IMG/VR virus record: IMGVR_UViG_3300050821_002957
Span: 186,001-250,000 of that record
Strand: one strand, 5' to 3'
DNA: 64,000 nucleotides
Under the pieces are notes generated by a model, which made no database searches, was not told where the DNA came from, and worked only from the letters and a program-made list of their open reading frames with translations. Numbering within the stretch: position 1 is the first letter of the stretch; each line of letters begins with the position of its first letter. Made by a program: the position numbers and the translations under genes. This document shows, one piece after another, positions 8,385 to 59,627 of the stretch.

Positions 8385-8621
8385 TTAGACAGGTACTTTT
8401 GGTTCAAGAAGTTTTTTGATTCCCCGGCGTGCCATCGTGGTCAGCTTGGGAATTTTTTTGGTTTTGAACTGGTTCTTCTTTTTCTTCTTTTTCTTCTTTT
8501 TCTTTTTCTTCTTCGGTTTTGGTGGTGTCAATCCTAGTGTCTTATAAATCGATTTCTTCTTCGGTGGCGACAGCAACGCCGAAGCATCAAACTCTTTTAG
8601 AAACTGGGTGAATGTAAGCAC
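8385..8621 (-). CDS. Poly-lysine basic protein with capsid-targeting-like N-terminus (MLTFTQFLKE)
   Basis: TAAATA 5 nt before GTG 8621; 13 consecutive Lys codons at 8475-8513. Confidence 0.65.
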   Translation of the reverse strand: MLTFTQFLKEFDASALLSPPKKKSIYKTLGLTPPKPKKKKKKKKKKKKKNQFKTKKIPKLTTMARRGIKKLLEPKVPV

Positions 8622-8656
8622 TGGAGTATTTAGTTTTTGCGTGCCTAAATAGCAAC

Positions 8657-8908
8657 ATGAACGAAGCAATTGTATACCAAGTACGCTCAGTCGATGCTTT
8701 CGGCAAACAGAACGTGGTCCATTCCTATGAAACCGAAGAGGCTGCAAAGGTCGCTATCAAAATGATGCAGAAGCGAACACGAAAGCGGTATGTTGTTCAT
8801 CCTGTCAAGAATCGGCCTGCGGAACACTGGGGCATTAACTTTCCACCCAACCATCCGAAGCATCCAGACAATCTTAAAAACCCACCAAAGAGCCGCCGTT
8901 TAAGTTGA
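8657..8908 (+). CDS. Small basic late protein
   Basis: TAAATA 8646-8651, 5 nt, ATG. Confidence 0.7.
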   Translation: MNEAIVYQVRSVDAFGKQNVVHSYETEEAAKVAIKMMQKRTRKRYVVHPVKNRPAEHWGINFPPNHPKHPDNLKNPPKSRRLS

Positions 8909-8939
8909 CAAGATTTGAACTCATGCGATCATAGTACGC

Positions 8940-9197
8940 ATGAATAACATTTTGCTGAACGATCCTGACACATTCATTCAATGGCGCAAAACCGATGAAC
9001 CCGGCGATAATCCAAAGTGGGAATCGCAGTGTGGTTATATCGAACAAACCAGCTTCGGGGATCGTCCAATATTCCAAGGATTTGTCGGCCCCAACCAAAC
9101 ACCCACTCAGACAAAGACCAGTCTAATTTCAATCAAACAAGAAGTCGAGCGGCTGTTTAAAAAGAATTATCAACTGACCTGGGCTTATCAAGATTAG
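8940..9197 (+). CDS. Hypothetical protein
   Basis: ORF downstream of TTGACA 8905. Confidence 0.6.
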   Translation: MNNILLNDPDTFIQWRKTDEPGDNPKWESQCGYIEQTSFGDRPIFQGFVGPNQTPTQTKTSLISIKQEVERLFKKNYQLTWAYQD

Positions 9198-12100
9198 GTC
9201 GGAATAAACATAGCGTTTTGATTGCGCTCATAAGATGTATCAGTGTTCTTTGCACGTAGGTCACCAGTATGAGTACTGTTATTGTTAGTGATCTTTGTGG
9301 TCTGTGGTGCAATGATCTGATGTCCGGTTCCTGATTGTCCTGACGTTCTGTTCAATTCAGAATTTACCGCTGAGACTTGTGCCAATTGAACACCAGTGCT
9401 TTCAGGAGACAATTTCGGTGTATCAAGTCTAGGAGCAGCAGTATTTGTAGCTGTGGCAACCATTGCAGGCATTGACGTTGCTGTTGGTCGATCTACAGGC
9501 TTTGGACTACGTGATAAAGCTGTCACCACATTCTTTTGATTAGCTACGTTCTTGATTGTATCGCCGTAACCTCTAGCCGTGGCATACTTCGCTCCCATGT
9601 TCTCAATGAACTTGTTTACATCTCCAGTCTTTTGATATTCGGCAAAGGCAGCGGCATACGGACCCTTTGGATTAGATAGGAGTTTTGCGTGAGCTATGAA
9701 ACCTTCTTCCATAGTCTTGTAATCGGCAAACTCTCTCTTGACTGAAAATCTTTTTTTGCCTGACCAACCCATCTTCAAAGGAGAGCCATCCAACTCTGTT
9801 GCTGTAGCTGCTTCTTTCGGTTTTGATTTTTGAAATTGAGCGAATTCAGCGGGAGTCATGTCTTCCTGGGTCGTTCTAGTCTGACTCATCGTATCGCTTT
9901 TTGATTTGGTGACTCCAAATGCATTGTTACCAATCGAATGCTTACCCCAACCAGATTCTACGGCCCATTGTGCAATTGTTACTTGAGCCGGAACACCAGT
10001 TGCTTTTTCTGCATCCATTGCCATCTGTGCGATTTCTGGTGGAACTTCGCCCTGCTTGTACTTGATGTTTTTGTTCTGTGTTCCGCCACCTGTTCCAAGA
10101 ATACCGATACCTGAACCACCAGCCGCCGTGACACCAGAAGATTGTGGCTGTGGCGTTGCAGGTGTCGGTGAGGTTGGTGAAGATGTCGGCGCAACTGTTT
10201 TCGTCTGTGTTGGCGATGTTGTCGGAGTGTGAAAGCTACGAGCAGTCTTTGCCAATTCAGGTGTAGATGAAATTGGAGTAGCAGGAGGCGGATTCAATCC
10301 TCTACGTGGCGTTACAGTATTTTGTGTCTGTTGGGTCGGAGCAGGCGCAGCACTAGGAGCCGGTGCTGAAGTAGTTGGTGCAGGCTTGGCTGTTTCTGCT
10401 GTCTTCTTACCGCCGCCAAATGGATGTAGAATTGAATTGATCTTATCAGAAATCCAATCAATGACAGATTTGATAGCATCGGTTACTGACTGCAAGGCAT
10501 CTGTCAAAATTTTGGTGTTTTGTGGGCCAATAATGTTTTCGACCATCTTCTTGATCGAATCGAAAACACTGGAGAAGGCCGTACTGATACTTGCAAACGC
10601 TTTGGTGATGGTCTCCATACCAGGGATCTTCATGATCTCTTGACCAAAGTTTTCAAATGATTTTGTGAATGCCTCGATTACCTTATCCAATGCATCTTTG
10701 ATGGTATCGAGATTGAACATCGTCAAGAACCATTTGCCAAGCGCACTGAACATTCCCAGTACACCATCTTTCAGTTCTTCTATTCCTTTGTCGAATGTCT
10801 TAGGATCAGACAAATCGGACAGACCATCGATGAACTTTGACAGTCCTTCAAAAAAGTCGCCGATGATCTCAATCATCTTGCCAAGACGTTTTGCGACAAA
10901 CTCCAGGATCGGTCCCAGAACTTTGAAGATTGGTTTGGATGCCACATAGAGAGCACTCAAAATGGAACCAATTGCTTTGAAAATGCTGGCAAACGATTTT
11001 GCGCTGGTCTTTCCAAGTGTCTTTCCAATTTCTGTTTTGACACCTGCCAATCCGAGCACGAAATCAATAATTCCGAACAGACCTTCGACCACGCCGCCTA
11101 AACCACCAGCGACCCGATCCATCATCGTCAATTTCTTTTTGTCTCCAAGATACTTTTCTGCGTGCATGAATGCCGGGATGAAATCGAAGATAGCAGTGAT
11201 TGCCATAATGACTTCGCCGACAACTGGAATGAAATCTAGGAATTCAGCCATTCGACCTGCGCCACCCAAGAGTTTTGCGCCCTTGAGCATCTCGCCGCCT
11301 TCGGCCAGGAGCTTAGTACCACCCTTTGCACCTGCTTCAGCACCTTCCCCGACTGCCTTTCCAACCTCTCCCAGACCCTTTGCGCCGTCCTCTACGGCTT
11401 CGATGCCGCTTGCCGCACCCTCAACACCCCTTCCAGCCCCAGAAGCGCCCTTGCCTCGTCCAAACCAGCGCTTGAACATGCCTCCTTCTTCAGCTTCAGC
11501 CCCACCTTTAGCAGTTTTGTTGCCGAGACCCAGCCACTTTCCAATTTTGCCGCCAAACAACCGTCCGATTCCGGCTTCAATGCCAGACATGAGACCGCCG
11601 AGCAAACCGCCCTTTTTCCCACCTGATTTTTTGGCGACATCAGCAAGCAATCCACCAGCATCGCCATCGGTTGTTTCCCGACGCTTTGCGTTCGCATCCA
11701 ATTCGGATTGATCTAGTTGCTTTGCAAGCAATTTGTTGATTTCTTTTAGTTCAATCAACTGCTCTTCGTCTAATTTTGCGACTCTCGAAAGCGGACCTTC
11801 TTTGTCGCTGGTAAGAATGCTCAATTTTTTGTCTTGATCTTTTTGGACACCTTCCATGAGCTTGAGCAAACCTGCGGTATTACTTTGGCTCGCCAGTTTT
11901 TCAGGATGTAATGTCGGTTCATCCAAATCCATACGCCCGTTTTGAACAAGCTCTGGAGCCGCCGCCTTTTTCAATTGTGGTGGTGCTTCAAATTTTTCTA
12001 CGTTTGGCATCGCATGAACAGCAGCAGTCATCATTGCTTTGACTGGACTGTTGTACGGATTTTTCATGCGCTCCGCTTCTTGCTTTTCCATATGGGCTAA

Positions 12101-13486
12101 AGCAGTCGGTTTCGGATGAGATTCTTCACCAAAAATTTCCGGCCAATCTGGTGTGCCTGAAGGCTTTTTTAAACTATCTTCATGCTTCTTTTGTAATAGA
12201 CCTTTACCATGCTTTCTGATGGACTCTAACCATGCATCACGTTCATCTAACTCTTGCTGCTTCTTTGGTGTGCTCTTCTGATAACCTGCCCAATCAGGAA
12301 TTGCATTACCCAAGTGATCCCGAACCAATTGCTGAGGAGCCGAGGACACAGATGGTCCGTGAGCTACTGCGGTCGGAGACGTTGATCCTATTGTTTGAAG
12401 TGGTGACTGAGATACTGGTGTTGACTGTCCTTGAGAACCAGCGGCACGTTCCCATAAAGGTTGATAATCAGGGCGCAACAATTCAGCACGCAAATTCTGA
12501 TGCTGTTCTGTGCTGATCTTACCCTTAGCGTGCAAATTTTCAAGAGCGGAGTGGCGAACATCTTCGTCTTTGATTTTTCCAAGATGTTCCTTTACGGTAT
12601 CATGATCATGTTTGACATCAGCATCGTCAAGCATCGGTTCATCCGGGCGTGGTAATACTTTTTTGATGTCACCGACTTTGAATTGATTAGCTTTTGTTTT
12701 CTGACGTGCTTCTCGACGATCACGCATTTTTTCGAGAATATACTTGGTAGCTAAACCGACAATCGGAGAGTGACCAGCCAAACCAGAGATGACACTGACT
12801 GCATCAATATTTTGCTTCTGTAAGAACGAACCCATTTTACCGAGCAAACCTGTACGCTGACGTGTCTCTTGCTCCAATGCCTTTTGTAGATTAAGAGTGG
12901 CATTAGTGAGAATCTTATTTTCGGTGCCGACAGTGCTGAATCGAACACTCTCTTGAATATCAGAGAGCTTTTTCTTTGCTCCTTCCAGTTCGTCCTTGCT
13001 GTACGTATGGTACTCGGACGCCATGCTATCAATATTTTCAGCGTGGCGTTTTCCTGCATCGGAATACACATTACCACGTCGTTGCTTAATCAGCTTTTCT
13101 TTGTCTTTCTTTTTTTGAAGCGCAGTAAGTTGATCGACGACTTTTTTGGTAGATGCTTCGACCTGACGAATCTTCTCGAAATCGTCATCATTGTTGTTGC
13201 CACCAGTAGACTTTCTTGGAGACCTTGGACGACTGCCACCGCCACCTGAAGACGAGTTACGAGGAGCAGATCCACCGCCGCCACCTGAAGACACGTTGCC
13301 ATCCTTTAACATGTCTGCTAGGTCTTCGGCTGCGTTTTCAGTGGCCTGTTGAAATACCTGATGGATTTTGGTCGTCAGCTTCTTGGACAGATCATCTAAG
13401 AGATCTTCTTTGTCCACAAGCGTCAGATTTGAAACATCAATCTGATTCAGGTCTACCCCGTTTTTTGTTGTCTTCTTGGATGGCAT
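9194..13486 (-). CDS. Baseplate hub / tail length determinant (gp29-like) with C-terminal GH73 (FlgJ-like) peptidoglycan hydrolase
   Basis: 1430 aa; Gly-rich and amphipathic repeats; AQWAVESGWG..NNAFG..YAT motifs; C-terminal APxT..NNNST; follows 26 and 51. Confidence 0.8.
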   Translation of the reverse strand: MPSKKTTKNGVDLNQIDVSNLTLVDKEDLLDDLSKKLTTKIHQVFQQATENAAEDLADMLKDGNVSSGGGGGSAPRNSSSGGGGSRPRSPRKSTGGNNNDDDFEKIRQVEASTKKVVDQLTALQKKKDKEKLIKQRRGNVYSDAGKRHAENIDSMASEYHTYSKDELEGAKKKLSDIQESVRFSTVGTENKILTNATLNLQKALEQETRQRTGLLGKMGSFLQKQNIDAVSVISGLAGHSPIVGLATKYILEKMRDRREARQKTKANQFKVGDIKKVLPRPDEPMLDDADVKHDHDTVKEHLGKIKDEDVRHSALENLHAKGKISTEQHQNLRAELLRPDYQPLWERAAGSQGQSTPVSQSPLQTIGSTSPTAVAHGPSVSSAPQQLVRDHLGNAIPDWAGYQKSTPKKQQELDERDAWLESIRKHGKGLLQKKHEDSLKKPSGTPDWPEIFGEESHPKPTALAHMEKQEAERMKNPYNSPVKAMMTAAVHAMPNVEKFEAPPQLKKAAAPELVQNGRMDLDEPTLHPEKLASQSNTAGLLKLMEGVQKDQDKKLSILTSDKEGPLSRVAKLDEEQLIELKEINKLLAKQLDQSELDANAKRRETTDGDAGGLLADVAKKSGGKKGGLLGGLMSGIEAGIGRLFGGKIGKWLGLGNKTAKGGAEAEEGGMFKRWFGRGKGASGAGRGVEGAASGIEAVEDGAKGLGEVGKAVGEGAEAGAKGGTKLLAEGGEMLKGAKLLGGAGRMAEFLDFIPVVGEVIMAITAIFDFIPAFMHAEKYLGDKKKLTMMDRVAGGLGGVVEGLFGIIDFVLGLAGVKTEIGKTLGKTSAKSFASIFKAIGSILSALYVASKPIFKVLGPILEFVAKRLGKMIEIIGDFFEGLSKFIDGLSDLSDPKTFDKGIEELKDGVLGMFSALGKWFLTMFNLDTIKDALDKVIEAFTKSFENFGQEIMKIPGMETITKAFASISTAFSSVFDSIKKMVENIIGPQNTKILTDALQSVTDAIKSVIDWISDKINSILHPFGGGKKTAETAKPAPTTSAPAPSAAPAPTQQTQNTVTPRRGLNPPPATPISSTPELAKTARSFHTPTTSPTQTKTVAPTSSPTSPTPATPQPQSSGVTAAGGSGIGILGTGGGTQNKNIKYKQGEVPPEIAQMAMDAEKATGVPAQVTIAQWAVESGWGKHSIGNNAFGVTKSKSDTMSQTRTTQEDMTPAEFAQFQKSKPKEAATATELDGSPLKMGWSGKKRFSVKREFADYKTMEEGFIAHAKLLSNPKGPYAAAFAEYQKTGDVNKFIENMGAKYATARGYGDTIKNVANQKNVVTALSRSPKPVDRPTATSMPAMVATATNTAAPRLDTPKLSPESTGVQLAQVSAVNSELNRTSGQSGTGHQIIAPQTTKITNNNSTHTGDLRAKNTDTSYERNQNAMFIPT

Positions 13487-13489
13487 TCA

Positions 13490-13798
13490 TTATCCGTTTA
13501 GTTGCTGTGGTCCATCAACTTTAGTAGTCGGATCGGGTAAAAGTTCATGCTTTGCTTGGTTACCCTTTTGGACGGCGTTGATGCGTTGCTGTTGAATGGT
13601 TGGTTCTGTCAAGTTCATTCTAAAGTTCAAGAATGTCTTTGCCGAACTGCGAAACCACGTCCAGGTCCATTGAGGGATCTCTTTGAACGAGGGCAGCATT
13701 TCAGGCATTGATCCGATGGTTGCCGACGCCAAAAGACCCAACATTAACTGGTTGTCTTTCGCCCAGGTTAGAATTTGTTCGATTGATGGCATGATCAT
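13490..13798 (-). CDS. Late protein with a hydrophobic segment; possible membrane or holin-like protein
   Basis: TAAATA 5 nt before ATG 13798. Confidence 0.5.
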   Translation of the reverse strand: MIMPSIEQILTWAKDNQLMLGLLASATIGSMPEMLPSFKEIPQWTWTWFRSSAKTFLNFRMNLTEPTIQQQRINAVQKGNQAKHELLPDPTTKVDGPQQLNG

Positions 13799-13841
13799 GG
13801 GACTATTTATGTCCAAGCCAATCAATAGATACATCAATAGT

Positions 13842-14003
13842 TTAGCGTTTTCTATTGTTCTCGTCGGCGATCCGTTTGTTTTCCGAATCGATGTAGTCTT
13901 TGATGAGAACTAGATAGGCATCACGTTCCCACGGTATCATTCCCTCGACCTCAGTCAACGAATACTTATGGTGAAACATGAGACTGAAGTTCACCATGAA
14001 CAT
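13842..14003 (-). CDS. 51: Baseplate hub assembly protein, short gp51-like form (53 aa), absent from the ORF track
   Basis: NFSLMFHHKYSLTEVEGMIPWERDAY matches the T4-like gp51 pattern. Confidence 0.85.
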   Translation of the reverse strand: MFMVNFSLMFHHKYSLTEVEGMIPWERDAYLVLIKDYIDSENKRIADENNRKR

Positions 14004-14029
14004 ATTCGGGAGTGAATTGTGGCTGAGGG

Positions 14030-14842
14030 CTATCCGAAAAAACTTGGAAGTCCCTCGATGTGGAGAGGTTCTTCATATCCACACTTTGAGCAATGGAACT
14101 GAGTATCATGTGCCAGCTTCGGAATTGATTCAAAAAACTTCTGAAGTTTGACAAACTGTGCCTGAGTTAGCTTCTCAACCCATTCTTGGATATCTTTGGT
14201 TGTAAAGTTGTTATAGACTGACTCTTCGTCAAAGACAGATTCGATACAAAGAGCAATAGTAATCAGAGCGTCGTTCACATTGTCCTTTGGAGTTACAACG
14301 GCCCCAGTCGCACGTAATAACTGTCTTGCCATCTTAAAATTTGGATAGCGCATGTTAACGCCAAGTGTTTCGGTCAAGAAAATCTGCTTCTGATGATCTT
14401 CGTTGAATTGTATCCTTACGTCATCCAGATTGATCTTAACTTTTACTACATGGTCACAATCGGCAATGATCGGTGCATCAGGATCATCATTGGACTTTTT
14501 GAAAATTCGACGTTTTTCAGCTTCTTCCGGCGTCAATGTCACTTTGTTGTGGCAACGATAACTCAATTCGACATTGGAATCTACCGAGCGTGAGCGCAAT
14601 TGTAAGAAGATGAATTCCAAATCGAAATTTGCCAGTTCTTCTACTTTGATTGGCGAAAGAGCACATGACGTGACTACCTGGACGATAGCATCGAGCATCT
14701 GCCTTTCATCTTCACCTTCCAATGCAATGAGCAACAGTTTCTCCTCTTTTACAAGGAACGGACGAAACTGGATTCCCTGGCCGGTGGACGGAATGATGAT
14801 TTCAAAATGGGGAACGATCTTTTCGAGATTGGGTAATGGCAT
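14030..14842 (-). CDS. 26: Baseplate hub subunit, gp26-like
   Basis: IPSTG..FRPFLVKEEKLLL..FDLEFIFLQLRSRSV..CSKC..EGLPSFF. Confidence 0.9.
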   Translation of the reverse strand: MPLPNLEKIVPHFEIIIPSTGQGIQFRPFLVKEEKLLLIALEGEDERQMLDAIVQVVTSCALSPIKVEELANFDLEFIFLQLRSRSVDSNVELSYRCHNKVTLTPEEAEKRRIFKKSNDDPDAPIIADCDHVVKVKINLDDVRIQFNEDHQKQIFLTETLGVNMRYPNFKMARQLLRATGAVVTPKDNVNDALITIALCIESVFDEESVYNNFTTKDIQEWVEKLTQAQFVKLQKFFESIPKLAHDTQFHCSKCGYEEPLHIEGLPSFFG

Positions 14843-14874
14843 ACTGATCGTATGTAGTCACCACAAAAACAACG

Positions 14875-15657
14875 TTATGTTAGTCCACCACTTGTGCCCG
14901 GACCATTATTGCTGCCGGGACCATTGACGGTCTGTGTAAACGGAACGTTCGTACCTGTGGCAGAACGTATCGCTGTTGTCTGACCACCATTGTTAGAGCC
15001 ACCATTGATGTAAGTCCAAGCACTCGCATATTTGTACGTAAAGGTCACTTGGATGGTCTGGAACGTATTGTTGTTTGCGTAAGCTAAAGGTTGTTGAGCA
15101 ATGGCAATAGGATACGCATCGATCAAGATAGTATAATAATTTGGGCTTACTTGAGCACCGCCGACCGACCCAGACCCAGAGTTTGCAAAATCTGGATATT
15201 GAACAATGGCAATGTCGGTGCAATATTCACTGATGTAGTTGAAATTGTTGGTGTTGAAATCCATCACCATGTACATCCAAGCCTCAAAAAACCAACGCTC
15301 ATTCATTTGGTTACCGCACATGAACGTCATAGTTGTGTCTTGATATTCCGGGCGATGAGGAATCTTGTACGATGGACCATAGGAACGATTGGTCTCCATT
15401 TGAAACTGATAGCTAGGAAGCTCAGACTGTTGACAATAAGCCTGTAATTCAATAGCCATCGTGGACGTGTCACCACTAAAATAGTCAGCCATCCAATCTA
15501 CAGCATCGTCGCTAAACTGGAGAATAGCGGATTGTGCATTGTAGATTGCGGTAGATCGCTGCGCCAGAGCTTGAGTAGGAATGGTAATGTCATAACAATT
15601 TTGAACAGCCCAACCTGTGCTATTCAATTGTGATCGGAATGCGTCGATGTTTAACAT
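14875..15657 (-). CDS. 54: Tail tube initiator / tube-fold protein, gp54-like
   Basis: CQQSELP..YGP..ERWFFEAW..DAYPIAI..VTFTYK; synteny. Confidence 0.7.
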   Translation of the reverse strand: MLNIDAFRSQLNSTGWAVQNCYDITIPTQALAQRSTAIYNAQSAILQFSDDAVDWMADYFSGDTSTMAIELQAYCQQSELPSYQFQMETNRSYGPSYKIPHRPEYQDTTMTFMCGNQMNERWFFEAWMYMVMDFNTNNFNYISEYCTDIAIVQYPDFANSGSGSVGGAQVSPNYYTILIDAYPIAIAQQPLAYANNNTFQTIQVTFTYKYASAWTYINGGSNNGGQTTAIRSATGTNVPFTQTVNGPGSNNGPGTSGGLT

Positions 15658-17368: not shown

Positions 17369-17373
17369 ATACG

Positions 17374-17392
17374 TATTTAGCCCATATAAATA
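17374..17392. promoter_or_regulatory. Back-to-back T4-type late promoters
   Basis: TAAATA on minus (17379-17374) and TATAAATA on plus (17385-17392). Confidence 0.8.
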
Positions 17393-17399
17393 AGTGCAA

Positions 17400-18455: not shown

Positions 18456-18456
18456 A

Positions 18457-26828: not shown

Positions 26829-27008
26829 TTACCGTCTCAAGAGATTTTCTGTATGTTTCAAAAACATCTCGTGCGACTGCATCAGAGCATACAAGGCAAG
26901 CTGATCACGTTCGTCGGGAGTTGCTTCGAGCTTCATGAAGAGGCTCGGAATGATTACGAGTGTTTGGTAGGCTCCCAACACTGTGCAGGACGTTCCGTCA
27001 AGTTTCAT
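26829..27008 (-). CDS. 59-aa protein, tandem paralog of 27164-27349, absent from the ORF track
   Basis: MKLDGTSCTVLGAYQTLVIIPSLFMKLEATPDERDQLALYALMQSHEMFLKHTEN. Confidence 0.75.
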   Translation of the reverse strand: MKLDGTSCTVLGAYQTLVIIPSLFMKLEATPDERDQLALYALMQSHEMFLKHTENLLRR

Positions 27009-27163: not shown

Positions 27164-27349
27164 TCATCTCTGAGACCTTGTGATGTTCTCAGTGTGGCGC
27201 AAAAACATCTGATGGCATTGCATTAGCGCATACAAAGCAAGCTGATTTCGTTCGTCTTCGGTCGCTTCTAGCGTCATAAACAAAGAAGGAATGATCACCA
27301 AAGTATGGTAAGCATTCCGAATCGTACACAGTTTTCCATCGAGCTTCAT
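27164..27349 (-). CDS. 61-aa protein, tandem paralog of 26829-27008
   Basis: Shared TLVIIPSLFM.LEAT.DER.QLALYALMQ. Confidence 0.75.
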   Translation of the reverse strand: MKLDGKLCTIRNAYHTLVIIPSLFMTLEATEDERNQLALYALMQCHQMFLRHTENITRSQR

Positions 27350-44800: not shown

Positions 44801-46377
44801 AACCTTCGCCGGAATGACTTTTTCTGGGATGAATTCGATTGTTGCCCCAAGAACGTTCGGAAGTGCAGCAAATTCCGCTCGAAGTGCTTCAAGTTCTTCT
44901 GAATTTGGAGTCATTTATTCGTCCGGGGATTGAGAATCGACAAATAAATGAGGCCAGCAGCGCCCAAATCGATAATTCCACTGATTCCGTTGCCTCTGAA
45001 GAATTGTCCGAGACCCAGAAATACCAGAATTGCGAAGAAAATCCAACAAAAAACTTGTATTATTCTCATAAATCAGTCCAGTGAGACGATTCTTTCGTTC
45101 GCTCCGACACAACCTCGGTGAATCCGTCCGTCCCGGCCCATGTAGCGGACCATCGTCACCGCATGAGGCCGATGAGACCTGTTTGATTCCTTCTTTTTCA
45201 TGAACCGCTTCAATGCCTTTTTCAAAATGTTCTTCATGGAACTCTCCGTATTCATGATAACACAAACTTATTCGTGGATTGTGATCTTTAAAATCCTGTG
45301 CGGCGGAATCCATGTCATCCCGTCGTCAATCCAGACACCGACCGTAGAAATAACGGCATTGACTTTCTCTCGTGTCGCTGCAATCTCAGCCGTTTTTACT
45401 TCATTCGAGTTGTTCATATACCACAGAATCATTTCTTTTCCTTATAATCGCCCCAAGGACGCTTCTTATTTCTGTTGATCAAGATTCCCAGACCTATCGG
45501 AACCGCAAACATGAAAAGGACCCAGACGGTGGCAGGCAGGTAGATCATATAGTCGTCCCTACAAACCCCTCACCAGTCCACCGCTGCCATAGTTCAACAT
45601 CGTTTCGTCTTTCCGCAAAGGACGTTTCTGTCCTGCATCCACAACGACGCATTTGCCACAGGTCGAGCAGTGGAGCTTGGTTCCATCGAGGAGGTCTTTA
45701 GCTTCCATTTCGTTAATTCTTCATCAGATGATCGTGAATCTTGGTAAAGACTTCCTGAACTTTTTTGACAAAGAACTCGTCCAGTGCAATGATGTCGGCA
45801 GTTACGATCTGACCCTGCGTCGTAGACAGGAAATTGAAGAGGGCGGCTGCTGCGTCAAATCCTGCGGTTACCGGATCAAGAGCGACCGGAGCCAGAGATG
45901 CGACATTCAAATTTGGAATCACTTCTTTGATCGGCTCTCCTGCAATGACAGCAGCGGCTCCAGTGATGACTGCTTCATGCGGATCGACCAGGGTGTCAGT
46001 GAGAGCTTTCGCAACACCTTCTGGACTGATGTCGTGAACTCGGTCAGGAACACAGAGAGGCTCGGCGGCTTTTTCCAAAGTCTTCAGAACATTGTCAGAA
46101 ATCTTGGATGCTTGATTAGTTTGATATTTCATATACTACACTCATATAGCATCGATCAATAAGGCTTCTCAAATACGACGGAACATCTGGGGCAACGCAT
46201 GTCTTTGTAATTCAGTTCGACATTGCAGGACGGACAGAAATAGGCTCCAGAAATACTCTGCATGTCCGGGATGAAGCGACAGACAGGACAATAGCCGCCT
46301 TGCAATCGTTCTTTACAGCCGTCGTCGTGGAAAGTTACAAAATTAGCTTTCATTTTTTCATCTTCCTTTTTTGTCAT
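41866..46377 (-). CDS. Array of small hypothetical ORFs (including 41866-42492, 42831-43103, 43336-43623, 43741-44025, 44006-44383, 44657-44914, 45713-46132, 46156-46377)
   Basis: Co-oriented coupled ORFs; no family recognised. Confidence 0.55.
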
Positions 46378-46618
46378 GGCGACTGTCGTAGTGACTCAGA
46401 CCCGGCTTTCGCTTGCTTCCCAGATGTTGGACGTGCTCGGGTTTGGATCGCTTCAGAATGTCCGGGAACATCTTCAGAATCGCTGCGGCCTTCTGTTGCT
46501 GTTCTTCTGTCAGAACAAACTTCTCACGGCGAGTTGTCTGGGCGGCTTGTTCGTACAAATCGTCCATGTATGCCTTGGCTTTGGCTTCTTCGGCAATGAA
46601 TTCTTTAAACGTCAGCAC
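46358..46618 (-). CDS. Putative internal head protein (MLTFKEFIAE)
   Basis: Close to the T4 capsid-targeting sequence MKTYQEFIAE. Confidence 0.6.
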   Translation of the reverse strand: MLTFKEFIAEEAKAKAYMDDLYEQAAQTTRREKFVLTEEQQQKAAAILKMFPDILKRSKPEHVQHLGSKRKPGLSHYDSRHDKKGR

Positions 46619-48349: not shown

Positions 48350-48479
48350 ATCGGGAAGGATACCTTAGTATTTTCTAGGTGTCAAGTTTTTGCGGCTGGC
48401 TCCGAACAAAAGGGACCCAATGAAGAAGGCAATGAAGAACTTTCCGATGGTTTTCATATTCTTGGAGTATAGCACTACC

Positions 48480-49377: not shown

Positions 49378-49399
49378 GGGCCTGCTATATATTTGAAAC

Positions 49400-49624: not shown

Positions 49625-49691
49625 CGAACACACCACTACAGGTTGCGCTTTGTGATATAAAGTTGACAGGTTTCTTGTAAGTTGTTCATAA

Positions 49692-50444: not shown

Positions 50445-50807
50445 ATTGTTGAAATAGCTGGGGATTGGTCTGGGCGATGTAATGGGGCTGGTGTGGAACT
50501 GCCCCGGCACACAGGCAGTTAGGACCAGCACGTTTCCCTCTTACCGTACACACGACCACGCTGTTTGACCACTTTGCTCCATTCCACTCCCCATTTGGCT
50601 ATCAAGTCGTTTTCAGAGTATCAAAATATAAATTGCAACATTTCAGCATCGATTCATCGGTCGTCAGATTCCACGGCACGGCCAAACTCTCTGCCTGTTA
50701 CGATGCGGTTTGCTGCCAATTAGACGAAGCTGGAGCGGTCGGTTCGTGGTGGCTGATATCTGAAGGCACTTGACAGAACAGCCACGCCGTGTGACGATCA
50801 AAAAGAA

Positions 50808-53800
50808 CATGAATCTCTGCATCCAAAAACAAAAAGCCGCTGCGTCTCTTCTATTGACGGCGGCTGCGGCATCTCACCACCAACAGCAGCAGCAACACCA
50901 CGACGATCTATTTGAATGCGTCACAGACGAACAGCGAGCAGAAGCGGCGAAGTTGCAAAAATTGGTCGAAGAGAAGGCAGAATCGATGCAAAGGCAATTT
51001 GATGATATTGCAATGAATCATAATTGGAACAGATGGACCTGTGCCTATGTGTTTCTTCATCCCGATACCAAAGACGGAATATATTGCTGGTCAATGATGT
51101 CGGACAAAATGATTCCAAGTCGAGGAGCAGCGGTCGAGCGCATGGCAAAGATCGGCTTCGATTTTCAAAATTCGCCGCACTACTTGTTCATGAATCAGAG
51201 AAGAGAAAAATGACAGAAAAAGTGCATGGCTTCAGACTGCTTCAATGGACTGACTGCAACAATTACATCTACGCCAAACCATACGACATAGAGGACAATG
51301 GTCAATATCGTTGGATGATCAGACAGAACATCAACAATGAAGACAACGAATTTTTGTATGATGGACTGCCATACCTCTACTGGAGAAAATGGAATCCGCA
51401 AGAGGCAAGACGATTTTTGGCGTTCTACACAGAAGAAAATGCAGTGGCTTTTTTCAATCGGTGGGTCGCATCAGAAGAAGAGCAGCAGCAACAACAAGAA
51501 GAGATAGACCCACAAATCAAACTTGAATTGCGAAAGGCGTTGGTGTACAATCTATCACATGATGACTCCACAAGAGATTCACAGCTTGGCGATCCAGCAT
51601 TTGGCCGGGAACATCGTCTTCGCACAGAATGTTCCGCCCGACATGGTTCCGAGTGTGTTCATGCCTTTGATTTTCATGACGGAAGAACAAAAGACTGAGC
51701 TAGAAAACAAGCTGGTGTCCGGTGATGTTGCCGATATTTACGAGCATATCTCTGAAGCCGGTCCACAGTCGGTCAATGGATTTCCGATCTTCATGTCGTA
51801 CAAAACCATTTCAAAAGACGATTTGGCTGCATTGGGAGCGAAAGTTGAATTGTTGAAAGGTCCTGGAGATCAGATATGAAGTTCGCTTGGCGTTGTAAAA
51901 TCTGCTCGAACGGTGAAATCATTTCGGTCAAGAACGGTGACAGCTTTCTAAAGACGATTGAAACAATGGCCTTCGATGTCATGGCGGCGCACAAAGCACT
52001 CGACCTGACTGGCTGTCCTGCGACTGAAAATGACATCGAAGCCAAAATTGTAGCCGAAGAAGAAGGATTTGTATCGAAGCAAGGACTGCGGCTCCGTAGT
52101 GCAGCGGTCTATTCGACTTACAAACGATTGACAATGAAGTGAATCCATGCGATCCTGGATGACACACACGCATACACAAATGAAATTTCTCAAAAAAGGA
52201 ATATGAAGAGATGAGTAGCAAAGCAGCAGCGACGATCAATAACAACAAGACAAAGCCTTCCGACGCACATGCAACGCTCGGAATGGTCATAGGGCCAGAG
52301 TACAAGCGTGATGCAGTCCACAGCGCCGTAGAGCCTGTTGTAGCCGGTTGTCTGCTTCGACCGGGCACACATGTCGGTTTTGTCGGTGACATGAACAATC
52401 CGAAAGAGGTTGGTCCGTCAGCAAATCCTGTCGGGGTGATCGATCCATATCTGAAATCTGACGTTCGTCCTGGTGAATGGGTCTGGATGTTCGTCTATCC
52501 TCGGACCATTACATCATTGCGGCACGTCTGGTCGCATCCTGCAATTCCTGACGAAAAAGAAATTGCTGCTGCTGTGTCGTCTGTCGATCCTGACGTTGCT
52601 GAATCTGAAGCATGGATTAAGAACTATGCGAGAGGCATCGGTGTGGACTACAACGAATTACTTCAGCACGCTCACGCCAAGGTAGACAATGACGACTACT
52701 GGTGCGAAGGTGGACGTTTTGAAGGTGAATATACTCCTGACGATTTCTGGGAGCACTTTGAAAAGGTGACCGGGCGTAGCGTCGATGAAAATAATCGAGG
52801 AAACTTCTTCTCATGCAGTTGCTAGTCAAGACGTTTCAGACACCAATAACAAAATTGTGGGGACTCTCTACGGACGCTATTGTCGGCGCTCAACCCCATG
52901 TGATGGTGATGTGTGAAGACCCTGTTGTGCCGTGGCGTTGGCGTGATCGATCAGACATTTGTAAATATCCTGATATGTTGTTTTTAAGTGAACTAGAGGC
53001 CATTCAATTTGCTCTTAATCATCGAATGGTTGTGATGACAAGCACCAATGTAACCATCACAAGCATTCAGGATTCTTTCGACATTGGGCCTGCCTTGGTC
53101 AAACAAGTGGATCAGATGTTTACCGATGGTGCTGATTTTGATCCTGAGACGGTGAACAGAATGCAACTACGTCAAGAGATGAAAGAAAAGCTCGCCGATT
53201 TGTTGTGGGATCATGCGGTTGATTCGATAACCACGCCATCTGAATCACACCAATGGAAAGGTTGTTCTGTTTGTCAAGAAATCGAGGAGCTTTGGCTGAG
53301 GGTCTATGGTGCTGCGGTTCGGGACCAACAACAAGAAGAGAAGATCGACCCAGCCGTCAAGTTGCAATTACGCAAAGCTGTGTTAGATTTGAGTCAGACC
53401 GATAAAAAATGCCACTACGTCACCAAAGAATGCCCAGACGTGATCGGCGGCGACAACAAAGACGTGAGCGACAGCATGAAAAATGTGGTGCATGATGTTG
53501 GTATGTAGGTGAACGAATGTTTTATGTATTAGACGAAAACGTTAGTACTGATTTGTACATCTTAACTAGGCACACACCCACCGTGAAGACAGGCTGGCTG
53601 ATTTATCAGGAAGACTCGATTTGGAATAAGTTTTTGGCTTACGATCCAGTAGACAATAATTGGGTCTGGAAGAAATGGTCGTATGAAGATCCCAATTTCA
53701 TTCACTTTCAAACAAAAGAATCGGCAGAACAGTTCTACAATGCCATCAAACGTAAATGGGATTTTCAGAAACAGGTCGATCAACAAGTCTTAGATAAGAG

Positions 53801-55240
53801 CGTCTCGGCGATCCTTCGCAAGGCCACACTGGAAATCAAAAAGGTAAATCATGTTACATCTCAAGAGCAATTCATGGATCATTCGCCTGTACAAGTTTTC
53901 GGAACGGATGAAGAGCGGCTTTCACGGTTGGTCTCACACTAGGACAAGCTACATCGAGACAGACGATACTACCAATCTTTGTTACATGGTCAGGTCGATT
54001 GTTATTTATTTGCCCTTCATGATCTTTATGCGGGTGGCTGCGATTTGGGCAATACTTGAAGCAGCAGCACTTTATCCCATGTCGAAAGTTGGCTGGCGCT
54101 GGTGGATTGTGCCGGGATGGATCGTCGGCACCATTGTAGTACTAGTGATTTTTGTCGTCGGCTGCATCTTACTCTATGAGTTTCTTGACGAATATTTCAA
54201 GAAAAGATTCAAAGAAAGATCCGCCAAGCCTCCATCAGATTGGACCAAAGTCGTCGGCGAGTTCATTGTTGCTCGACACAACGACATCTGCCCAGAAATT
54301 GTGATTGACCCGACAAAAAAAGAGAGATAATAATGAAAGCTGTTCTGAAAAACTCGCTGCTGCCGTACATATTCAATTTTGTCAAGGCTGCTCTGAAAGA
54401 CCTTTTCAATTTTATCAAAGAAGAAGTGTTTCCGTTTCGCATGTACGTCTGTGTCTGGATCTTGATTATCTGTGGCATCGTCATCGGTATCGAAAAATTG
54501 TCTTACGAACAAACTGTCTGGAATGGACCTGCGAAAGTGATAGGTGCGAATCTTACGAGTGCAGATCACGTTGAGTTGACTTTAGTGACGACTGATGGCA
54601 CGAACAAAAAATTCACGACAGAAGACAACACTATTGTCTTTGCGTACATGACGGGCACGACAACATTTCAATGTGCAATCGCTGAAATGGGTTCGGCGTC
54701 TTGTAAGGCACCCATCATAAAAAAATGAATTTCTGGGTTAAAATTTTCAACATTACTCGGCCTGAAGATTGGCTTGGTAAAATTATTGAAAGAGAGAACA
54801 ACATGCTCCTCAAAGCCTCAATTACGCTTTTCGACAGTCATGGACATGCTAGAGCAACGAAAGAATTTGCATTTGAAGACCGAGACTACACCGATTATTG
54901 GGATAGACTAGACTTTGACCCGGCACCCTGCGACTATGGAACAATCACTAAAGTCAGAGTTGTGATTGGCAATCAAGAGCGTTGGATTGATTGTTTCACC
55001 AAAATCCCTAAAAATGATACCCTTTACATTTTGATGTACAGCATTCCCTGGAAAGAAATGATGATCGACGTTAGAGCTTCACTGCTCGCATCGGTCACTA
55101 AGAATTTTTCGTCGTTGAAATCCCTGTTGTACGAGCGTTCTCCTCTTCCATCGTCCTTGTCTTTATCTTGCCGACAAAAAGCAAAGGCGGAAAACGTCGA
55201 GACACAGGTTGTTCCGGCGCAAAATCCTCAATTGTTTTAA
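50808..55240 (+). CDS. Array of hypothetical ORFs (50808-51213, 51210-51698, 51559-51879, 51876-52142, 52211-52825, 52813-53508, 53517-53942, 53851-54330, 54333-54728, 54725-55240)
   Basis: Co-oriented ORFs; three share a QQQEE..LRKA module; two have TM helices. Confidence 0.6.
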
Positions 55241-55359
55241 GATCGGCTGACCACATGAAGTGCGGCCACCAGCCATAGTGAGACTTTCGGACTATCAAAT
55301 AGCCTCCACGAGTCAACCAACGGCCTATGGAAAATATAAGGCAATTCGACATTAGTGAT

Positions 55360-56247
55360 TCAATAGCGGTTATGATGATCGTATCTGTTTCTGGTGGCTT
55401 TTTGATACGCCTTAGCTACATCCGTACTAAATCCATGATCACGAGCAACAATGTGTTGAGAACCGTCTGGATGCTCAAAGACGCCTAAGTTTTTCTTCTG
55501 GTGATAGTCGTTCGGTGAGTGCCCAGTATTGCCGTGATAGTCCTGAAATTTCTGAACAAGTGGATGCTGATTCAGACGATGATGTTCTGCTTCTTGCTCA
55601 GACGTTCCTGAGTAATGTCTACCGTTGTTCTGGTCGTGGTTGTGGACCAAGGTATTGACAAACTGTTTGTGATTGATACCTTTTGGAAACTCTTTGTTCT
55701 TGGTCAGCTTTTGAAACTCTCCAGGCTTGATGTCTCGCACATGGCCGACGTGAGACCATTCATGTTTTTCGTGGTCATGATCAATCAATGGAGGAAAGAT
55801 GCCGCTTTCTTTGTTTGAACTGTAATGATTTGATCCTTTCTCCGGTTCGTAGCGAAGAATACGATAGTTTCCGTTCACCCAATGATCGCCACCTTCTGCG
55901 TGGTTTTGCATGGCACCCAGGCTCATTCCGTCGTGTTCTGAGGCTTTGTGATGCTTGTCGAGTGCGGCTCTGATGGCAACTTTTGTTCCAGAATGGATGT
56001 GTGCATCTTTGCCGTCAAGAACAATGTGATGCGGTGTGTCATGTTTCAAATAGGCTCTGGACGAACCTTTGGGCATGTTACCTTCGATGCCAGTCTTCTG
56101 TCCGCTGTTGGTCAATTGTTTGATCTTTTTTGCGAGCAGGCTTTGCTTTGGCGCATACGAATTTGAAGACGTAACAATCGACCGGAGTTCAGGATGAAGC
56201 TCTTCGACGATTACATTGTGGATGAAGTCTTTAAAATTGACCAGCAT
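55360..56247 (-). CDS. His-rich atypical protein kinase-like protein, putative internal head protein
   Basis: GSSRAY, KVA, QNHAE, DYHQKKNLG, IVARDHGF in kinase order; late leaderless; NFKDFI..VEE N-terminus. Confidence 0.65.
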   Translation of the reverse strand: MLVNFKDFIHNVIVEELHPELRSIVTSSNSYAPKQSLLAKKIKQLTNSGQKTGIEGNMPKGSSRAYLKHDTPHHIVLDGKDAHIHSGTKVAIRAALDKHHKASEHDGMSLGAMQNHAEGGDHWVNGNYRILRYEPEKGSNHYSSNKESGIFPPLIDHDHEKHEWSHVGHVRDIKPGEFQKLTKNKEFPKGINHKQFVNTLVHNHDQNNGRHYSGTSEQEAEHHRLNQHPLVQKFQDYHGNTGHSPNDYHQKKNLGVFEHPDGSQHIVARDHGFSTDVAKAYQKATRNRYDHHNRY

Positions 56248-56256
56248 GTCCAGTAT

Positions 56257-56511
56257 TTAGTCGAACAAACTGGCCTGATGAATCTTGGACAAATGCTTTT
56301 CTAAATTGGTGGGAGTCTTGCCGCCTTTCTTCTTCGCTGAGTGTGTCCATCCTGCGTCAGAGACGGTCGCTGTGTGGTCGAGACGAGGATGGGTATACTT
56401 GGTGACCCCGGACTCATTCGACGCCTTCTGATAGCCGTAATTGCGGAGCACAGCCTGGACTTTCTTGCTCGATTTGGACTCGGCGATCAGAAATTCGCTG
56501 AAGGATTGCAT
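56257..56511 (-). CDS. Putative internal head protein (MQSFSEFLIAE)
   Basis: Late promoter 5 nt before ATG; capsid-targeting-like N-terminus. Confidence 0.65.
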   Translation of the reverse strand: MQSFSEFLIAESKSSKKVQAVLRNYGYQKASNESGVTKYTHPRLDHTATVSDAGWTHSAKKKGGKTPTNLEKHLSKIHQASLFD

Positions 56512-56539
56512 GACTGTATTTAGCTGTATAGATATCCAT

Positions 56540-56758
56540 ATGAAGATTACACATCAAACAGAATTCGACCTCTTCGTGGCGCTCCTGCCTAGGGTGGTTG
56601 CTCAGAATCCGATTACAGAGCCAGCCGAAGTCATGGCAAAGACACAAGAGCTTATGGAGAAAGCCATTGAACATCTGGAAGAGAAAGGCATCGTTAAAGA
56701 CAGCACGCCTAACAAAAAGTTGAGCATTCGTCCACCAAACCGTTACGCTGAACTGTAA
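56540..56758 (+). CDS. Small late protein
   Basis: TATAGATA 5 nt before ATG 56540. Confidence 0.6.
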   Translation: MKITHQTEFDLFVALLPRVVAQNPITEPAEVMAKTQELMEKAIEHLEEKGIVKDSTPNKKLSIRPPNRYAEL

Positions 56759-56762
56759 TATT

Positions 56763-56978
56763 TCAGCCTTTAATAAAACTCAAGAGTTGGCGTGGACTGA
56801 TTTTTTCACATTCGGCTTCGATCTCAACGATGCGGCGTTTGGGAATATCATAATGAGGGAATCGGCCACCGTGAAACCAGCAACGTTTGATGTTGAGCCG
56901 GTCTGCCATCGTATGCAAATTTGGAATGCTGTACGGGACGCAGATCAGGTGTCGAGCGCCATCGGTATAGTAAATCAT
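56763..56978 (-). CDS. DUF4031-like protein
   Basis: HL..LHTMADRLNIKRCWF..PHYDIP. Confidence 0.7.
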   Translation of the reverse strand: MIYYTDGARHLICVPYSIPNLHTMADRLNIKRCWFHGGRFPHYDIPKRRIVEIEAECEKISPRQLLSFIKG

Positions 56979-56988
56979 TGAAATATTT

Positions 56989-57531
56989 ATGAGCTATTCG
57001 TACAAATTCAAAACCAACATCTATTATGACAAAATTGCAAAGGACTTGGCCGGAAGCGAGATTGGCGATGTCACGCAATTTCTGAACGAACTTGCAGAGG
57101 CATTGAAAGCTCGCCATACGCCGGAAGAAGATCAGGTGATTGTGATGCTGCCTGAAGATGCATTCTTTGGAACACTGGCGTTAGGTATTCAGGATGCAAT
57201 CACAAATGCCCAAGAGAAGGTCAAAGAGAACACTCGTATTGCCTTTGCCCAGCCGACACATGAACAAATTGAAGAGAAGATCAAAGAACTGCTTAACGGT
57301 GGTACTGATACATCGGTCGATATTCCATTTGATCCTGATTTGGTGGCGCTTCCTCTTGAAATGCGACGGGCTGAACAGATGAGTGGCATTAAGAGCAATC
57401 CAATTGAATGCCGATCTGATCTTTCAAGAGAAGAGCACATCAAACGAACCACCGATACGCTTCTTAGGAATACAGAAATAATGCTAGGCGACAAACAATA
57501 CAGAAAGCAAATGGGTGATCCTACCGTTTAG
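56989..57531 (+). CDS. Hypothetical protein
   Basis: 180-aa ORF. Confidence 0.6.
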   Translation: MSYSYKFKTNIYYDKIAKDLAGSEIGDVTQFLNELAEALKARHTPEEDQVIVMLPEDAFFGTLALGIQDAITNAQEKVKENTRIAFAQPTHEQIEEKIKELLNGGTDTSVDIPFDPDLVALPLEMRRAEQMSGIKSNPIECRSDLSREEHIKRTTDTLLRNTEIMLGDKQYRKQMGDPTV

Positions 57532-57935
57532 CGGTTTTTAAGGGTGTTTCTAGGATCAAACGAACCAACATTCTGAGCTTCAGCTTTCTCTCGCACACGG
57601 AGGCGTTTTGAACTTTGAATACCTAATAGTTCTTCGAGCTTCAGTTTTCCGCCTCCTCCCTTTTTGATCCATTCGCTATTGTCACTTTCAAATTCTAACG
57701 AGTCGATCTCAGTGTCGGTGTCAAAATAGGTTTCGTCAGCCTCACTGTCCAACAAAGCGAAGATGGGCCGCTTGGTGTTCTTGTCATAGAATTCATCTTT
57801 GGCTGGATCGTATTCGAGTTCTACTTCAGTGGTCCAACGTTTTGGCTTTGCTGCGATGTTCGAGGCCGGGAGTGGCAATGGTTTCTTTGATACTGCTTCT
57901 TCTAATTCTTTCTTCTTTGTCAATTCGATATTCAT
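57528..57935 (-). CDS. Hypothetical charged protein
   Basis: 135-aa ORF. Confidence 0.6.
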   Translation of the reverse strand: MNIELTKKKELEEAVSKKPLPLPASNIAAKPKRWTTEVELEYDPAKDEFYDKNTKRPIFALLDSEADETYFDTDTEIDSLEFESDNSEWIKKGGGGKLKLEELLGIQSSKRLRVREKAEAQNVGSFDPRNTLKNR

Positions 57936-58265
57936 AACGTATTTGTCTGACTATGTATCACGTTGAAGTCACAGATTGGGCACAAATAATGTGGGAGTCG
58001 TTTCACCGATCCCAATCGGAAATTGTACGCCACTAGGATGTGGGCGCAACGGAGACATTTCAATTTTATTTTGTCCATATTTGGCACGTCGAGCAATGAC
58101 GAAATCCCATCTCAGCTATCCATCGATGTCCTCGCACAAAGCATTTCGATTCACGGACAAAAAATTCTTTGTAGTGTCGATAGGCTTGAGGCATATGAAG
58201 TGTCCACCAAATCAGCCGCACCAAATCGTTCTTCGGTCGCCATGTGTACCACCAAAGACCAATAT

Positions 58266-58733
58266 TCATTGCTGTAATTTTTTGTATGCATCTCGTGCAG
58301 GCATGATACCTTCCCGACCGAGTTCTTTCATGGCTCGTGCGTTCTTATAAGATTTACCACCGTTCTTTGGGCGCTTGTAGACACCTGCGCTACCTGAGAC
58401 AGTCACTTCATCATTGTGGTCTGGTTTCATGAAATGTAGAGCTTTGAGTGCTGTCGCTTTGCCCTTTGGATGAGTAGCATCATAATGGACAAAGTGATGA
58501 AAACCGTGAATGCTGCTTACGTTCGCTCCGAATCTTGTGAAACCCTTTGCTTGAGCATCTTGAACAGAATCACCCTGTTTGCCGCCAGCTTTTATATAAT
58601 CGGGATGATGATTGGCATAGTGTTCTCCATGATGACTGAACAAATGTGCTTCACCAGACGGACTCATCCATCCTCTCATGGCTTTTTCTGGTTGCCACGA
58701 TTCGTTGATGAATTGGATAAAGGTCAGTAGCAT
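58266..58733 (-). CDS. His-rich putative internal head protein (MLLTFIQFINE)
   Basis: Capsid-targeting-like N-terminus; GWMSPSG..H motif. Confidence 0.6.
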   Translation of the reverse strand: MLLTFIQFINESWQPEKAMRGWMSPSGEAHLFSHHGEHYANHHPDYIKAGGKQGDSVQDAQAKGFTRFGANVSSIHGFHHFVHYDATHPKGKATALKALHFMKPDHNDEVTVSGSAGVYKRPKNGGKSYKNARAMKELGREGIMPARDAYKKLQQ

Positions 58734-59311
58734 TACTCTTCCGGTTTATAGTCTTCCTTCGGATGCGTTGCGTGGAAGACCGGCGCTTTCTTTGTTCCCA
58801 TGCCTTTCACACGCTCGACATGATGAAAACGCTTTGCCAATTCGTGATGAACATGATCGGCATCGATGTCATGAGCTTTGCGTGGAGACTCGGGGAAGTT
58901 GCCGGTGAATGCGCCACCTTTGTGAGTCGCCTTGTGAATTTGATCCAGCGTGTGACCCATCATCTTTTTGTTCGACTGGACGTTCAGAACATTAGATGCG
59001 TACACATGATGATACTTCTTGTCTAGTGCATGAGGATCGTGAACGCCGGGTTTCTGGTTGCTTCCAAATTCGTGTGCTGTGACGTTGTGACCTTTTTCAC
59101 GAAGGCGCTTTGCGTGCGCTGCTTCGTGGCCTGCACCGAAATCGAGAAGATGGCGACCTGCCTTGTCGTTGTGTTTAGCTTCGACAGCTTCGACGTGACG
59201 AGGCACCAGGGCCTTTGCGCCGACTGCACCAGCCGCACGAGAAGTGCTGTTGGCGATTTTCTTTTCTTCGTCGCTAAATTCGAGCAGCCAGTTGGTAAAG
59301 GACTTCATCAT
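58733..59311 (-). CDS. His-rich class I SAM-dependent methyltransferase-like protein, putative internal head protein
   Basis: LLDFGAG motif I, VTAHE motif II, YHHVYASNVLNV; late leaderless; KSFTNWLLE N-terminus. Confidence 0.7.
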   Translation of the reverse strand: MMKSFTNWLLEFSDEEKKIANSTSRAAGAVGAKALVPRHVEAVEAKHNDKAGRHLLDFGAGHEAAHAKRLREKGHNVTAHEFGSNQKPGVHDPHALDKKYHHVYASNVLNVQSNKKMMGHTLDQIHKATHKGGAFTGNFPESPRKAHDIDADHVHHELAKRFHHVERVKGMGTKKAPVFHATHPKEDYKPEE

Positions 59312-59627
59312 GCCAGTATTTAGCTGGCTTTGACTCCTACTTCCTTCAACTTACGAGGACGGCCTGCTTTGCGTCCCTTTACACGGTCGTACACACTGCG
59401 CTTGTGACTGTATCTGCGGCTACGAAAGATTTTATAGGCACGCTGAGTCAAAGTTTCGTCTTCTTTCATTTTAACACTCTCGATTGGAGTAGCGAAAATA
59501 TTGACCGGGCCGCAGCCTGTAAATTCGTATCCACAGTGTTCGCAGCCGAGACACGGTTCATTCACACAAACACCCGGCGAAAGTTTCTTTGGTTTATCGT
59601 TTGAAAGTTGAAATGCCATGACGGTAT

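Follow-up and report, generated by a model that had tools for sequence, protein, structure and literature searches.

The stretch analysed here (the window) is 64,000 nucleotides (nt) long and comprises bases 186,001-250,000 of one 405,631-bp virus record, IMGVR_UViG_3300050821_002957 (G+C content 46%). It contains six open reading frames (ORFs), all on the minus strand, whose predicted products begin with a similar leader of about ten residues that resembles the capsid targeting sequence (CTS) of the internal proteins (IPs) of phage T4. These ORFs were singled out in an initial annotation, which credited them with T4-type capsid-targeting N-termini; we find all six in place with the N-termini quoted there, except that two of them (8621 and 46618) initiate at GTG and not at ATG. 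Each ORF is named by the position of its first base, and the shared leader is called the tag. Positions refer to the window; those marked "genome" refer to the full record. The tagged ORFs of the window, including a doubtful seventh member, are as follows.

8385..8621, minus strand: 78-aa tagged ORF, (GTG)M-LTFTQFLKE
46358..46618, minus strand: 86-aa tagged ORF, (GTG)M-LTFKEFIAE; basic, with an isoelectric point (pI) of 9.7
55360..56247, minus strand: 295-aa tagged protein, MLVNFKDFIHNVIVE, then E; no known domain; large tagged family
56257..56511, minus strand: 84-aa small basic tagged protein, MQSFSEFLIAE; pI 10
58266..58733, minus strand: 155-aa tagged protein, MLLTFIQFINE; 9% His
58733..59311, minus strand: 192-aa tagged protein resembling class-I S-adenosylmethionine (SAM) methyltransferases, MMKSFTNWLLE; 12% His; homologues match PF13489
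30202..30411, plus strand: doubtful seventh member, 69-aa ORF, MNYTTFEKFLEE, from a weight-matrix scan

Profile searches identified the genes of a T4-type head in the same genome: a gp21-type prohead protease (Peptidase_S77, PF03420, E = 1.4e-38), the T4-type major capsid protein (Gp23, PF07068, E = 2.3e-141) and the T4 portal (gp20; Portal_T4, PF07230, E = 8.3e-171). The closest cultured capsid proteins, from pelagimyophages, the Methylophilales phage Melnitz, and cyanomyoviruses, are about 63% identical. Given these head genes and this degree of capsid identity, the virus is, on sequence evidence, a giant, uncultured and distant member of the T4 superfamily. The sequence was found in DNA runs from soil metagenomes, and a second soil DNA sample contained about half of the words sampled from the 55300-59400 stretch. 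Genes were called with a simple home-made scorer (Markov model plus ribosome-binding site); the 681 genes so called occupy 83% of the genome.

The shared leader and the T4 capsid targeting sequence

The CTSs of T4 IPI, IPII, and IPIII are reportedly the subject of work by Mullaney and Black in 1996 and by Repoila et al. in 1994. In the annotated T4 record (AF158101), the leader of IPII and IPIII reads MKTYQEFIAE. The tag of 46618 is the closest to it among the members (7 of 10 residues identical), and a BLASTP comparison of the 46618 protein with IPII aligned residues 1-10 only, with seven identities and nine positives. Across the tagged proteins the conserved positions are an aromatic residue at 4 (F), a second aromatic at 7 (F/W), I/L at 8, and E at 10. 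The T4 gp21 protease cleaves after the Glu of I/LxE, and a review of the T4 head describes amber-suppression experiments on IPIII in which targeting depended on residues 4 and 7, and processing on residues 8 and 10 (PMC9026906); the positions conserved here coincide with these four functionally mapped ones. The Glu sites in the tagged proteins include LKE, IAE, IVE, INE, LLE, LTE, MTE, LAE, and LRE, and in 56247 the site (IVE) sits five residues further along than in the T4 leader. Beyond the leader, we found no similarity of the mature parts to T4 IPI, IPII, or IPIII. A PHROG profile search of the six window proteins gave no match, and the sole match of the six in a Pfam search was a below-cut-off methyltransferase hit of 59311. 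The match of the leader to that of T4 IPII/IPIII, in a genome that encodes a gp21-type protease, Gp23, and the portal, bears out the attribution of these N-termini to the T4 type.

A short, amphipathic segment of this kind might instead be an address or regulatory peptide with a role outside the capsid, for example in membrane association, secretion, or degradation control, and the candidate 30202 does have a hydrophobic segment downstream. However, the tag contains an acidic residue and has no hydrophobic core, unlike Sec or Tat signals; it matches, position by position, a T4 sequence whose function has been mapped; and it is associated with a late promoter motif (see below). We regard a non-capsid address as very unlikely.

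The motif given in the initial annotation occurs six times at N-termini (at positions 2-4 of predicted proteins) and nine times in 106,331 internal positions; the N-terminal expectation is 0.17, so the enrichment is about 35-fold (Poisson p = 3e-8). Because that regular expression was derived from the data, we added an independent scan with the T4 sequence TYQEFIAE alone, in which nine N-termini scored at least 20, against 0.34 expected from internal windows. A weight matrix applied to 13,427 candidate starts in six frames placed 13 genes at or above 9.5, over a continuous background below about 9: the six window ORFs, the doubtful 30202, and six genes elsewhere (genome 20364, 282913, 283833, 289877, 369676, and 377472). 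Behind the tag, the sequences of the 13 are unrelated to one another. Weaker look-alikes of the tag occur at genome 139327, 374055, and 376621.

The six window ORFs had been described as otherwise unrelated, and indeed their mature parts show no BLASTP similarity to each other (all E > 0.2), which rules them out as paralogues. The codons for the conserved tag residues vary between copies; since the codons differ, the tag is a protein-level motif, and a DNA-level repeat as its source was ruled out. The motif is short, and the regular expression came from the same data, which would leave room for chance or for shared ancestry of six diverged paralogues. Against this, the a-priori T4-derived scan is strongly enriched too, no similarity extends past the tag, and the cargo (the part of each protein behind the tag) spans different Pfam domain families; we give chance or common descent hardly any credence.

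Late-promoter-like motifs, operon context and composition

Four of the six ORFs lie directly behind a TAAATA motif, as the initial annotation had it, and in each case the full motif is CTAAATA, 5-6 nt upstream of the start codon. A fifth copy lies on the opposite strand:

8627..8633, minus strand: CTAAATA, 5 nt before the GTG of the 8621 ORF
56254..56260, minus strand: CTAAATA, 6 nt before the ATG at 56247
56517..56523, minus strand: CTAAATA, 5 nt before the ATG at 56511
59317..59323, minus strand: CTAAATA, 5 nt before the ATG at 59311
8645-8651, plus strand: CTAAATA, divergent twin, 5 nt before the ATG at 8657

One further ORF, 58733, is coupled to such a gene, as was also claimed: its start codon overlaps the stop codon of 59311 (TAATG). 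No other 7-mer is as enriched upstream of genes as CTAAATA: 47 of its 79 occurrences are no more than 60 nt upstream of a called gene, and it is also found upstream of the capsid, portal, and other structural genes. Directly behind CTAAATA or its variant ATAAATA are 8 of the 13 tagged genes (Fisher p = 1.3e-7), and a further three are coupled to the gene before them; the genome-wide motif scan that the initial annotation had proposed thus gives 13 genes that are enriched among late-promoter-like genes. The doubtful 30202 has a Shine-Dalgarno-like leader and no CTAAATA. Most genes with the arrangement CTAAATA-N5-ATG are untagged.

The spacing between promoter motif and start codon is an observation in its own right. 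Among the 79 CTAAATA sites, ATG lies exactly 5 nt downstream at 23 and GTG at 6; among 119 TTGACw-N16-18-TAnnnT sites, ATG lies exactly 6 nt past the -10 hexamer at 38. Both promoter types are thus often set so that transcription should start at the start codon, without a Shine-Dalgarno sequence, and many genes genome-wide appear leaderless. The two CTAAATA copies at 8627-8651, back to back on opposite strands and 11 nt apart, look like a compact divergent late promoter pair. Two other late-promoter genes, at genome 254453 (minus strand) and 78709 (minus strand), have signal-peptide-like N-termini ending in FAQ or SAQ (MKTFILSLTLLLCSSFVFAQ, MKKLLLLAFCVATLSAQ), which may hint at the envelope type of the host.

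Start codons 5-6 nt behind a promoter motif are common in this genome, and four of the six ORFs have one, so the tag could conceivably be a feature of leaderless mRNAs, at the nucleotide level, where translation begins, and not a protein signal. But the codons of the conserved residues vary freely, the tag is absent from most CTAAATA-N5-ATG genes, some tagged genes have a leader or depend on coupling to the gene before them, and the residues are kept in homologues that are just 50-60% identical. This explanation is highly improbable.

In composition, the mature parts of 10 of the 13 tagged proteins have a pI of at least 9, compared with 19% of the proteome, which is acidic overall (p = 9e-6); such a charge fits proteins packed with DNA, like the basic internal proteins of T4. 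The mature part of 8621 is extreme (pI 11, 40% K+R, with a run of 13 Lys). The remark that three of the proteins are strikingly His-rich is correct: the proteome median is 2.0% His, and the mature 56247, 58733, and 59311 proteins, at 11.4, 9.0, and 12.2%, fall within the top 0.2-0.8%. Contigs from a soil metatranscriptome run are identical to 55300-55623 and 58758-58990 (in the 56247 and 59311 genes), an identity that does not in itself prove transcription.

Cargo and homologue families

The cargo in the window consists of three small basic proteins (8621, 46618, and 56511), the methyltransferase-like 59311, the 155-aa 58733, and the 295-aa 56247. For 59311, the PF13489 match (22.6 bits) is under the 27-bit cut-off; an LDFGAG motif is visible in the sequence, and many homologues have precomputed PF13489 or PF08242 matches; we describe it as a class-I SAM-methyltransferase-like protein. 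The fold of 58733 was predicted with confidence (predicted local distance difference test score, pLDDT, 85), and a fold search with it gave no significant match in the PDB. The structure model of 56247 has a pLDDT of 66. A kinase-like identity for 56247, suggested by motifs seen by eye, found no support and is not claimed: the top Foldseek hits were Rio1 and Rio2, at E values of 0.2-2 and TM scores of about 0.2, the VIA Z was below 3, and there was no PDB or Pfam profile match. Look-alikes in a protein atlas were set aside as below the trust level.

Outside the window, the tagged genes include the following.

genome 369676-370587, plus strand: fusion of Acb1 (PF23474, E = 5e-22, above the curated cut-off) and a ParB-like domain, in the order tag (MKTFAQFMTE), Acb1, ParB-like
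genome 281663-282913, minus strand: poly(A) polymerase/CCA-adding family enzyme (PF01743, E = 2e-32), tag (GTG)M-LSFTQFALLRE
genome 283453-283833, minus strand: tagged 126-aa protein from the tag scan, adjoining the CCA-adding-type gene

Both HxT/S motifs of Acb1 are visible in the fusion, which, if the tag works, would be a pre-packaged enzyme against cyclic-oligonucleotide-based antiphage signalling systems (CBASS). The CCA-adding-type gene and its 126-aa neighbour each have their own CTAAATA, and a tagged SprT-like protein is encoded just downstream of the capsid gene. Some of the cargo, judged from its domains, looks like counter-defence or host-takeover functions.

Homologues of the tagged proteins indicate that the tag is a separable module. 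For 59311 we found 207 homologues and examined 120: those with an extension of 13-30 residues before a conserved ANxTSR core are typically tagged, whereas none of the 18 with 12 or fewer residues before the core is, and distant homologues are without the tag. Tagged members of this family are more His-rich (6.9% vs. 2.8%), and a co-evolution of tag and His-richness was considered, but the link vanished in a tree-aware independent-pairs test. All 10 of the 58733 homologues are tagged; two of them have an extra zinc-ribbon-like insert, and since it lies behind the tag, the tag remains at the extreme N-terminus. In the 56247 family, the tag is present in nine of nine IMG/VR homologues as well as in a tandem paralogue, and the alignment shows F5, F8, and E15 to be invariant. 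An exhaustive profile search extended this family to 150 cluster representatives; the strict tag pattern is present in 41 of the 86 representatives of at least 240 aa, and many of those outside it have looser variants of the tag, as judged by eye. Both the 58733 and the 56247 families have many invariant His, Asp, and Gly residues. For 56511, a related contig encodes a tagged homologue with 67% identity in the same CTAAATA-N5-ATG context; the order of the cluster differs in that contig, where an additional domain is fused to the 58733-type one. The tag is retained across relatives in three families, and its residues are conserved in homologues of just 50-60% identity.

The Pfam domains begin behind the tag, at residue 15 for Acb1 and at residue 21 for the SprT-like domain. 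The closest Acb1 relative, on a 399,930-bp contig, starts with MKTYLQFLAE, and a stand-alone Acb1 homologue (51% identical) is untagged. The initial annotation had proposed that the tag was grafted onto its cargo; the untagged distant homologues of the methyltransferase-like and Acb1 cargoes support such grafting. Cultured phage genomes, searched for near matches and at the protein level, gave no match to the cluster DNA, to the proteins 56247 and 59311, or to one tagged homologue, nor did pattern-based locus searches of IMG/VR for 58733, 46618, 56511, and 8621, and a metagenome scan for 46618 returned nothing beyond one 99% identical copy.

Several other ORFs of the window deserve mention. 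Adjoining the 8621 ORF, 9194-13486 (minus strand) encodes a 1430-aa protein with a C-terminal glucosaminidase/lysozyme-type domain (PF01832, E = 1e-18), which may be a virion-associated cell-wall hydrolase. The neighbouring ORFs 26829-27008 and 27164-27349 (both minus strand; 59 and 61 aa) have near-identical starts (MKLDGTSCTV and MKLDGKLCTI) and are probably tandem paralogues. Far from the true portal gene, the small ORF 60383-60712 contains a portal-like segment (60539-60688, minus strand) that matches the T4 portal profile at E = 2.7e-9, over profile positions 187-235 only. A related contig has a similar gene of 104 aa (4160-4474), again with a Portal_T4 match.

Proposed packaging and injection, and known head proteins

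We consider it probable that the shared N-terminus is a T4-type CTS and that, by analogy with T4, the tagged proteins are targeted to the head, cleaved, and injected. Observed in this genome are the motif with its position and enrichment, the genes of a T4-type head, a tag that is separable from its cargo, late-promoter-like motifs in front of tagged genes, and a mostly basic charge. Targeting, cleavage, presence in the virion, injection, and the role of each cargo we infer from T4. On this model, the tagged proteins would be made late in infection, and the leader of about ten residues, with its aromatic residues at 4 and 7, would direct them to the scaffolding core of the assembling prohead. 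The gp21-type prohead protease would then cut after the Glu of [I/L/V/M]-x-E at positions 8-10, and the mature, mostly basic proteins would stay beside the DNA inside the head and accompany it into the cell in the following round of infection, as a mixed cargo of small basic proteins and enzymes. The picture drawn in the initial annotation, of a modular payload in which a short tag is joined to enzymes and small folds, therefore appears largely right, with packaging and injection proposed by analogy with T4.

Several observations weigh against this interpretation. A Glu cleavage site close to the tag is missing in two of the 13 tagged proteins (genome 283833 and 377472), and the Acb1/ParB-like fusion is acidic (pI 5.6). 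The weakest members are 8621 and 46618: 8621, the least certain of all, is an orphan with a low coding score and a lysine run, and 46618, without CTAAATA, is the last gene of an operon with a sigma70-like promoter near 48385. The hydrophobic segment of 30202 gives it the look of a membrane protein, the home-made gene calls are imperfect, and a complex prediction for the prohead protease and the 46618 protein gave no answer.

The leader could also be a propeptide of the prohead core on proteins that are passive components of the core or counter-ions of the DNA, filling or organising a very large head, and are not injected effectors. The mostly basic mature parts, the small size of several cargoes with no recognisable domain, and the 8621 product, which is mostly lysine, would all suit such a role. 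We nevertheless think it unlikely: there are recognisable enzymes among the cargo (Acb1, CCA-adding/poly(A) polymerase family, SprT-like protease, and SAM-methyltransferase-like), the 58733 and 56247 families have invariant His, Asp, and Gly residues typical of active sites, and the internal proteins of T4 are injected (PMC3012670).

If the tag is a T4-type CTS, the closest parallel is with the T4 IPs. As in T4, otherwise unrelated and mostly basic proteins share an N-terminal leader of about ten residues (positions 4 and 7 aromatic, position 8 I/L, position 10 E) in a genome with a gp21-type protease, and the tagged genes are dispersed as well as locally clustered, in a cluster that varies between close relatives. 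Unlike T4, with its three canonical IPs, this very distant phage, with a genome of 405 kb, has at least 13 tagged genes, and its cargo is without sequence similarity to the IPs and has recognisable enzymes and two large His-rich families absent from the cultured phages searched. Acb1 itself is known from T4 as gp57B, an anti-CBASS phosphodiesterase (PF23474), which the protein at genome 369676-370587 matches; unlike the T4 protein, it has the tag in front and a ParB-like domain behind. A fate like the one proposed here is that of T4 Alt and similar phage enzymes, which travel in the head, are cleaved by the gp21-type protease, and are delivered with the DNA; Alt, however, is without the IP-type ten-residue leader that the enzymes here carry. 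In SPN3US and phiKZ-like giant phages, the propeptides that target ejection proteins are long and are not known to form a common short N-terminal tag, and the capsid gene set is not known to be T4-like. What these phages share with the present one is a giant capsid with many head-internal proteins, there cut after Glu by a related prohead protease (PMC5694885, PMC7411985).

The principle of a shared tag on diverse cargo is not new, because the T4 literature already describes it: the internal proteins of T-even phages are diverse defence proteins with the CTS alone in common (PMC3012670), and the CTS has been suggested as an evolutionary means of getting various proteins into the head (PMC9026906). 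What is new is how far this phage lies from T4, how many genes carry the tag, the enzymes among the cargo, and the two large tagged families unmatched in the cultured-phage collection searched. In the literature searched, of which coverage was incomplete, no link of the CTS to cyanophage-type or metagenomic T4-like phages was found. A broader reading, which is possible but which we offer tentatively, is that the T4 CTS serves as a portable label across the whole T4 superfamily, including giant soil phages, and that it would deliver a multi-enzyme first-strike kit together with the DNA. In this phage such a kit would include the Acb1/ParB-like fusion against cyclic-nucleotide immune signalling, the CCA-adding-type enzyme for tRNA repair, the SprT-like protease, the methyltransferase-like protein, and the two large His-rich families.

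Proteins injected with the DNA act before any phage gene is expressed, which makes them leading candidates for roles in counter-defence and host takeover. If uncultured T4-like phages can be screened for the tag by sequence alone, the injected payload would be marked without a virion proteome; here it flags the Acb1 fusion, three further proteins (a tRNA nucleotidyltransferase, a protease, and one resembling methyltransferases), and two His-rich families that are widespread and uncharacterised. The conservation of the four mapped T4 CTS positions at great evolutionary distance also bears on CTS-based protein delivery by engineered T4 particles. If the label proves portable across the superfamily, scans of metagenomes for the tag could offer a direct route to hundreds of new injected anti-defence effectors.

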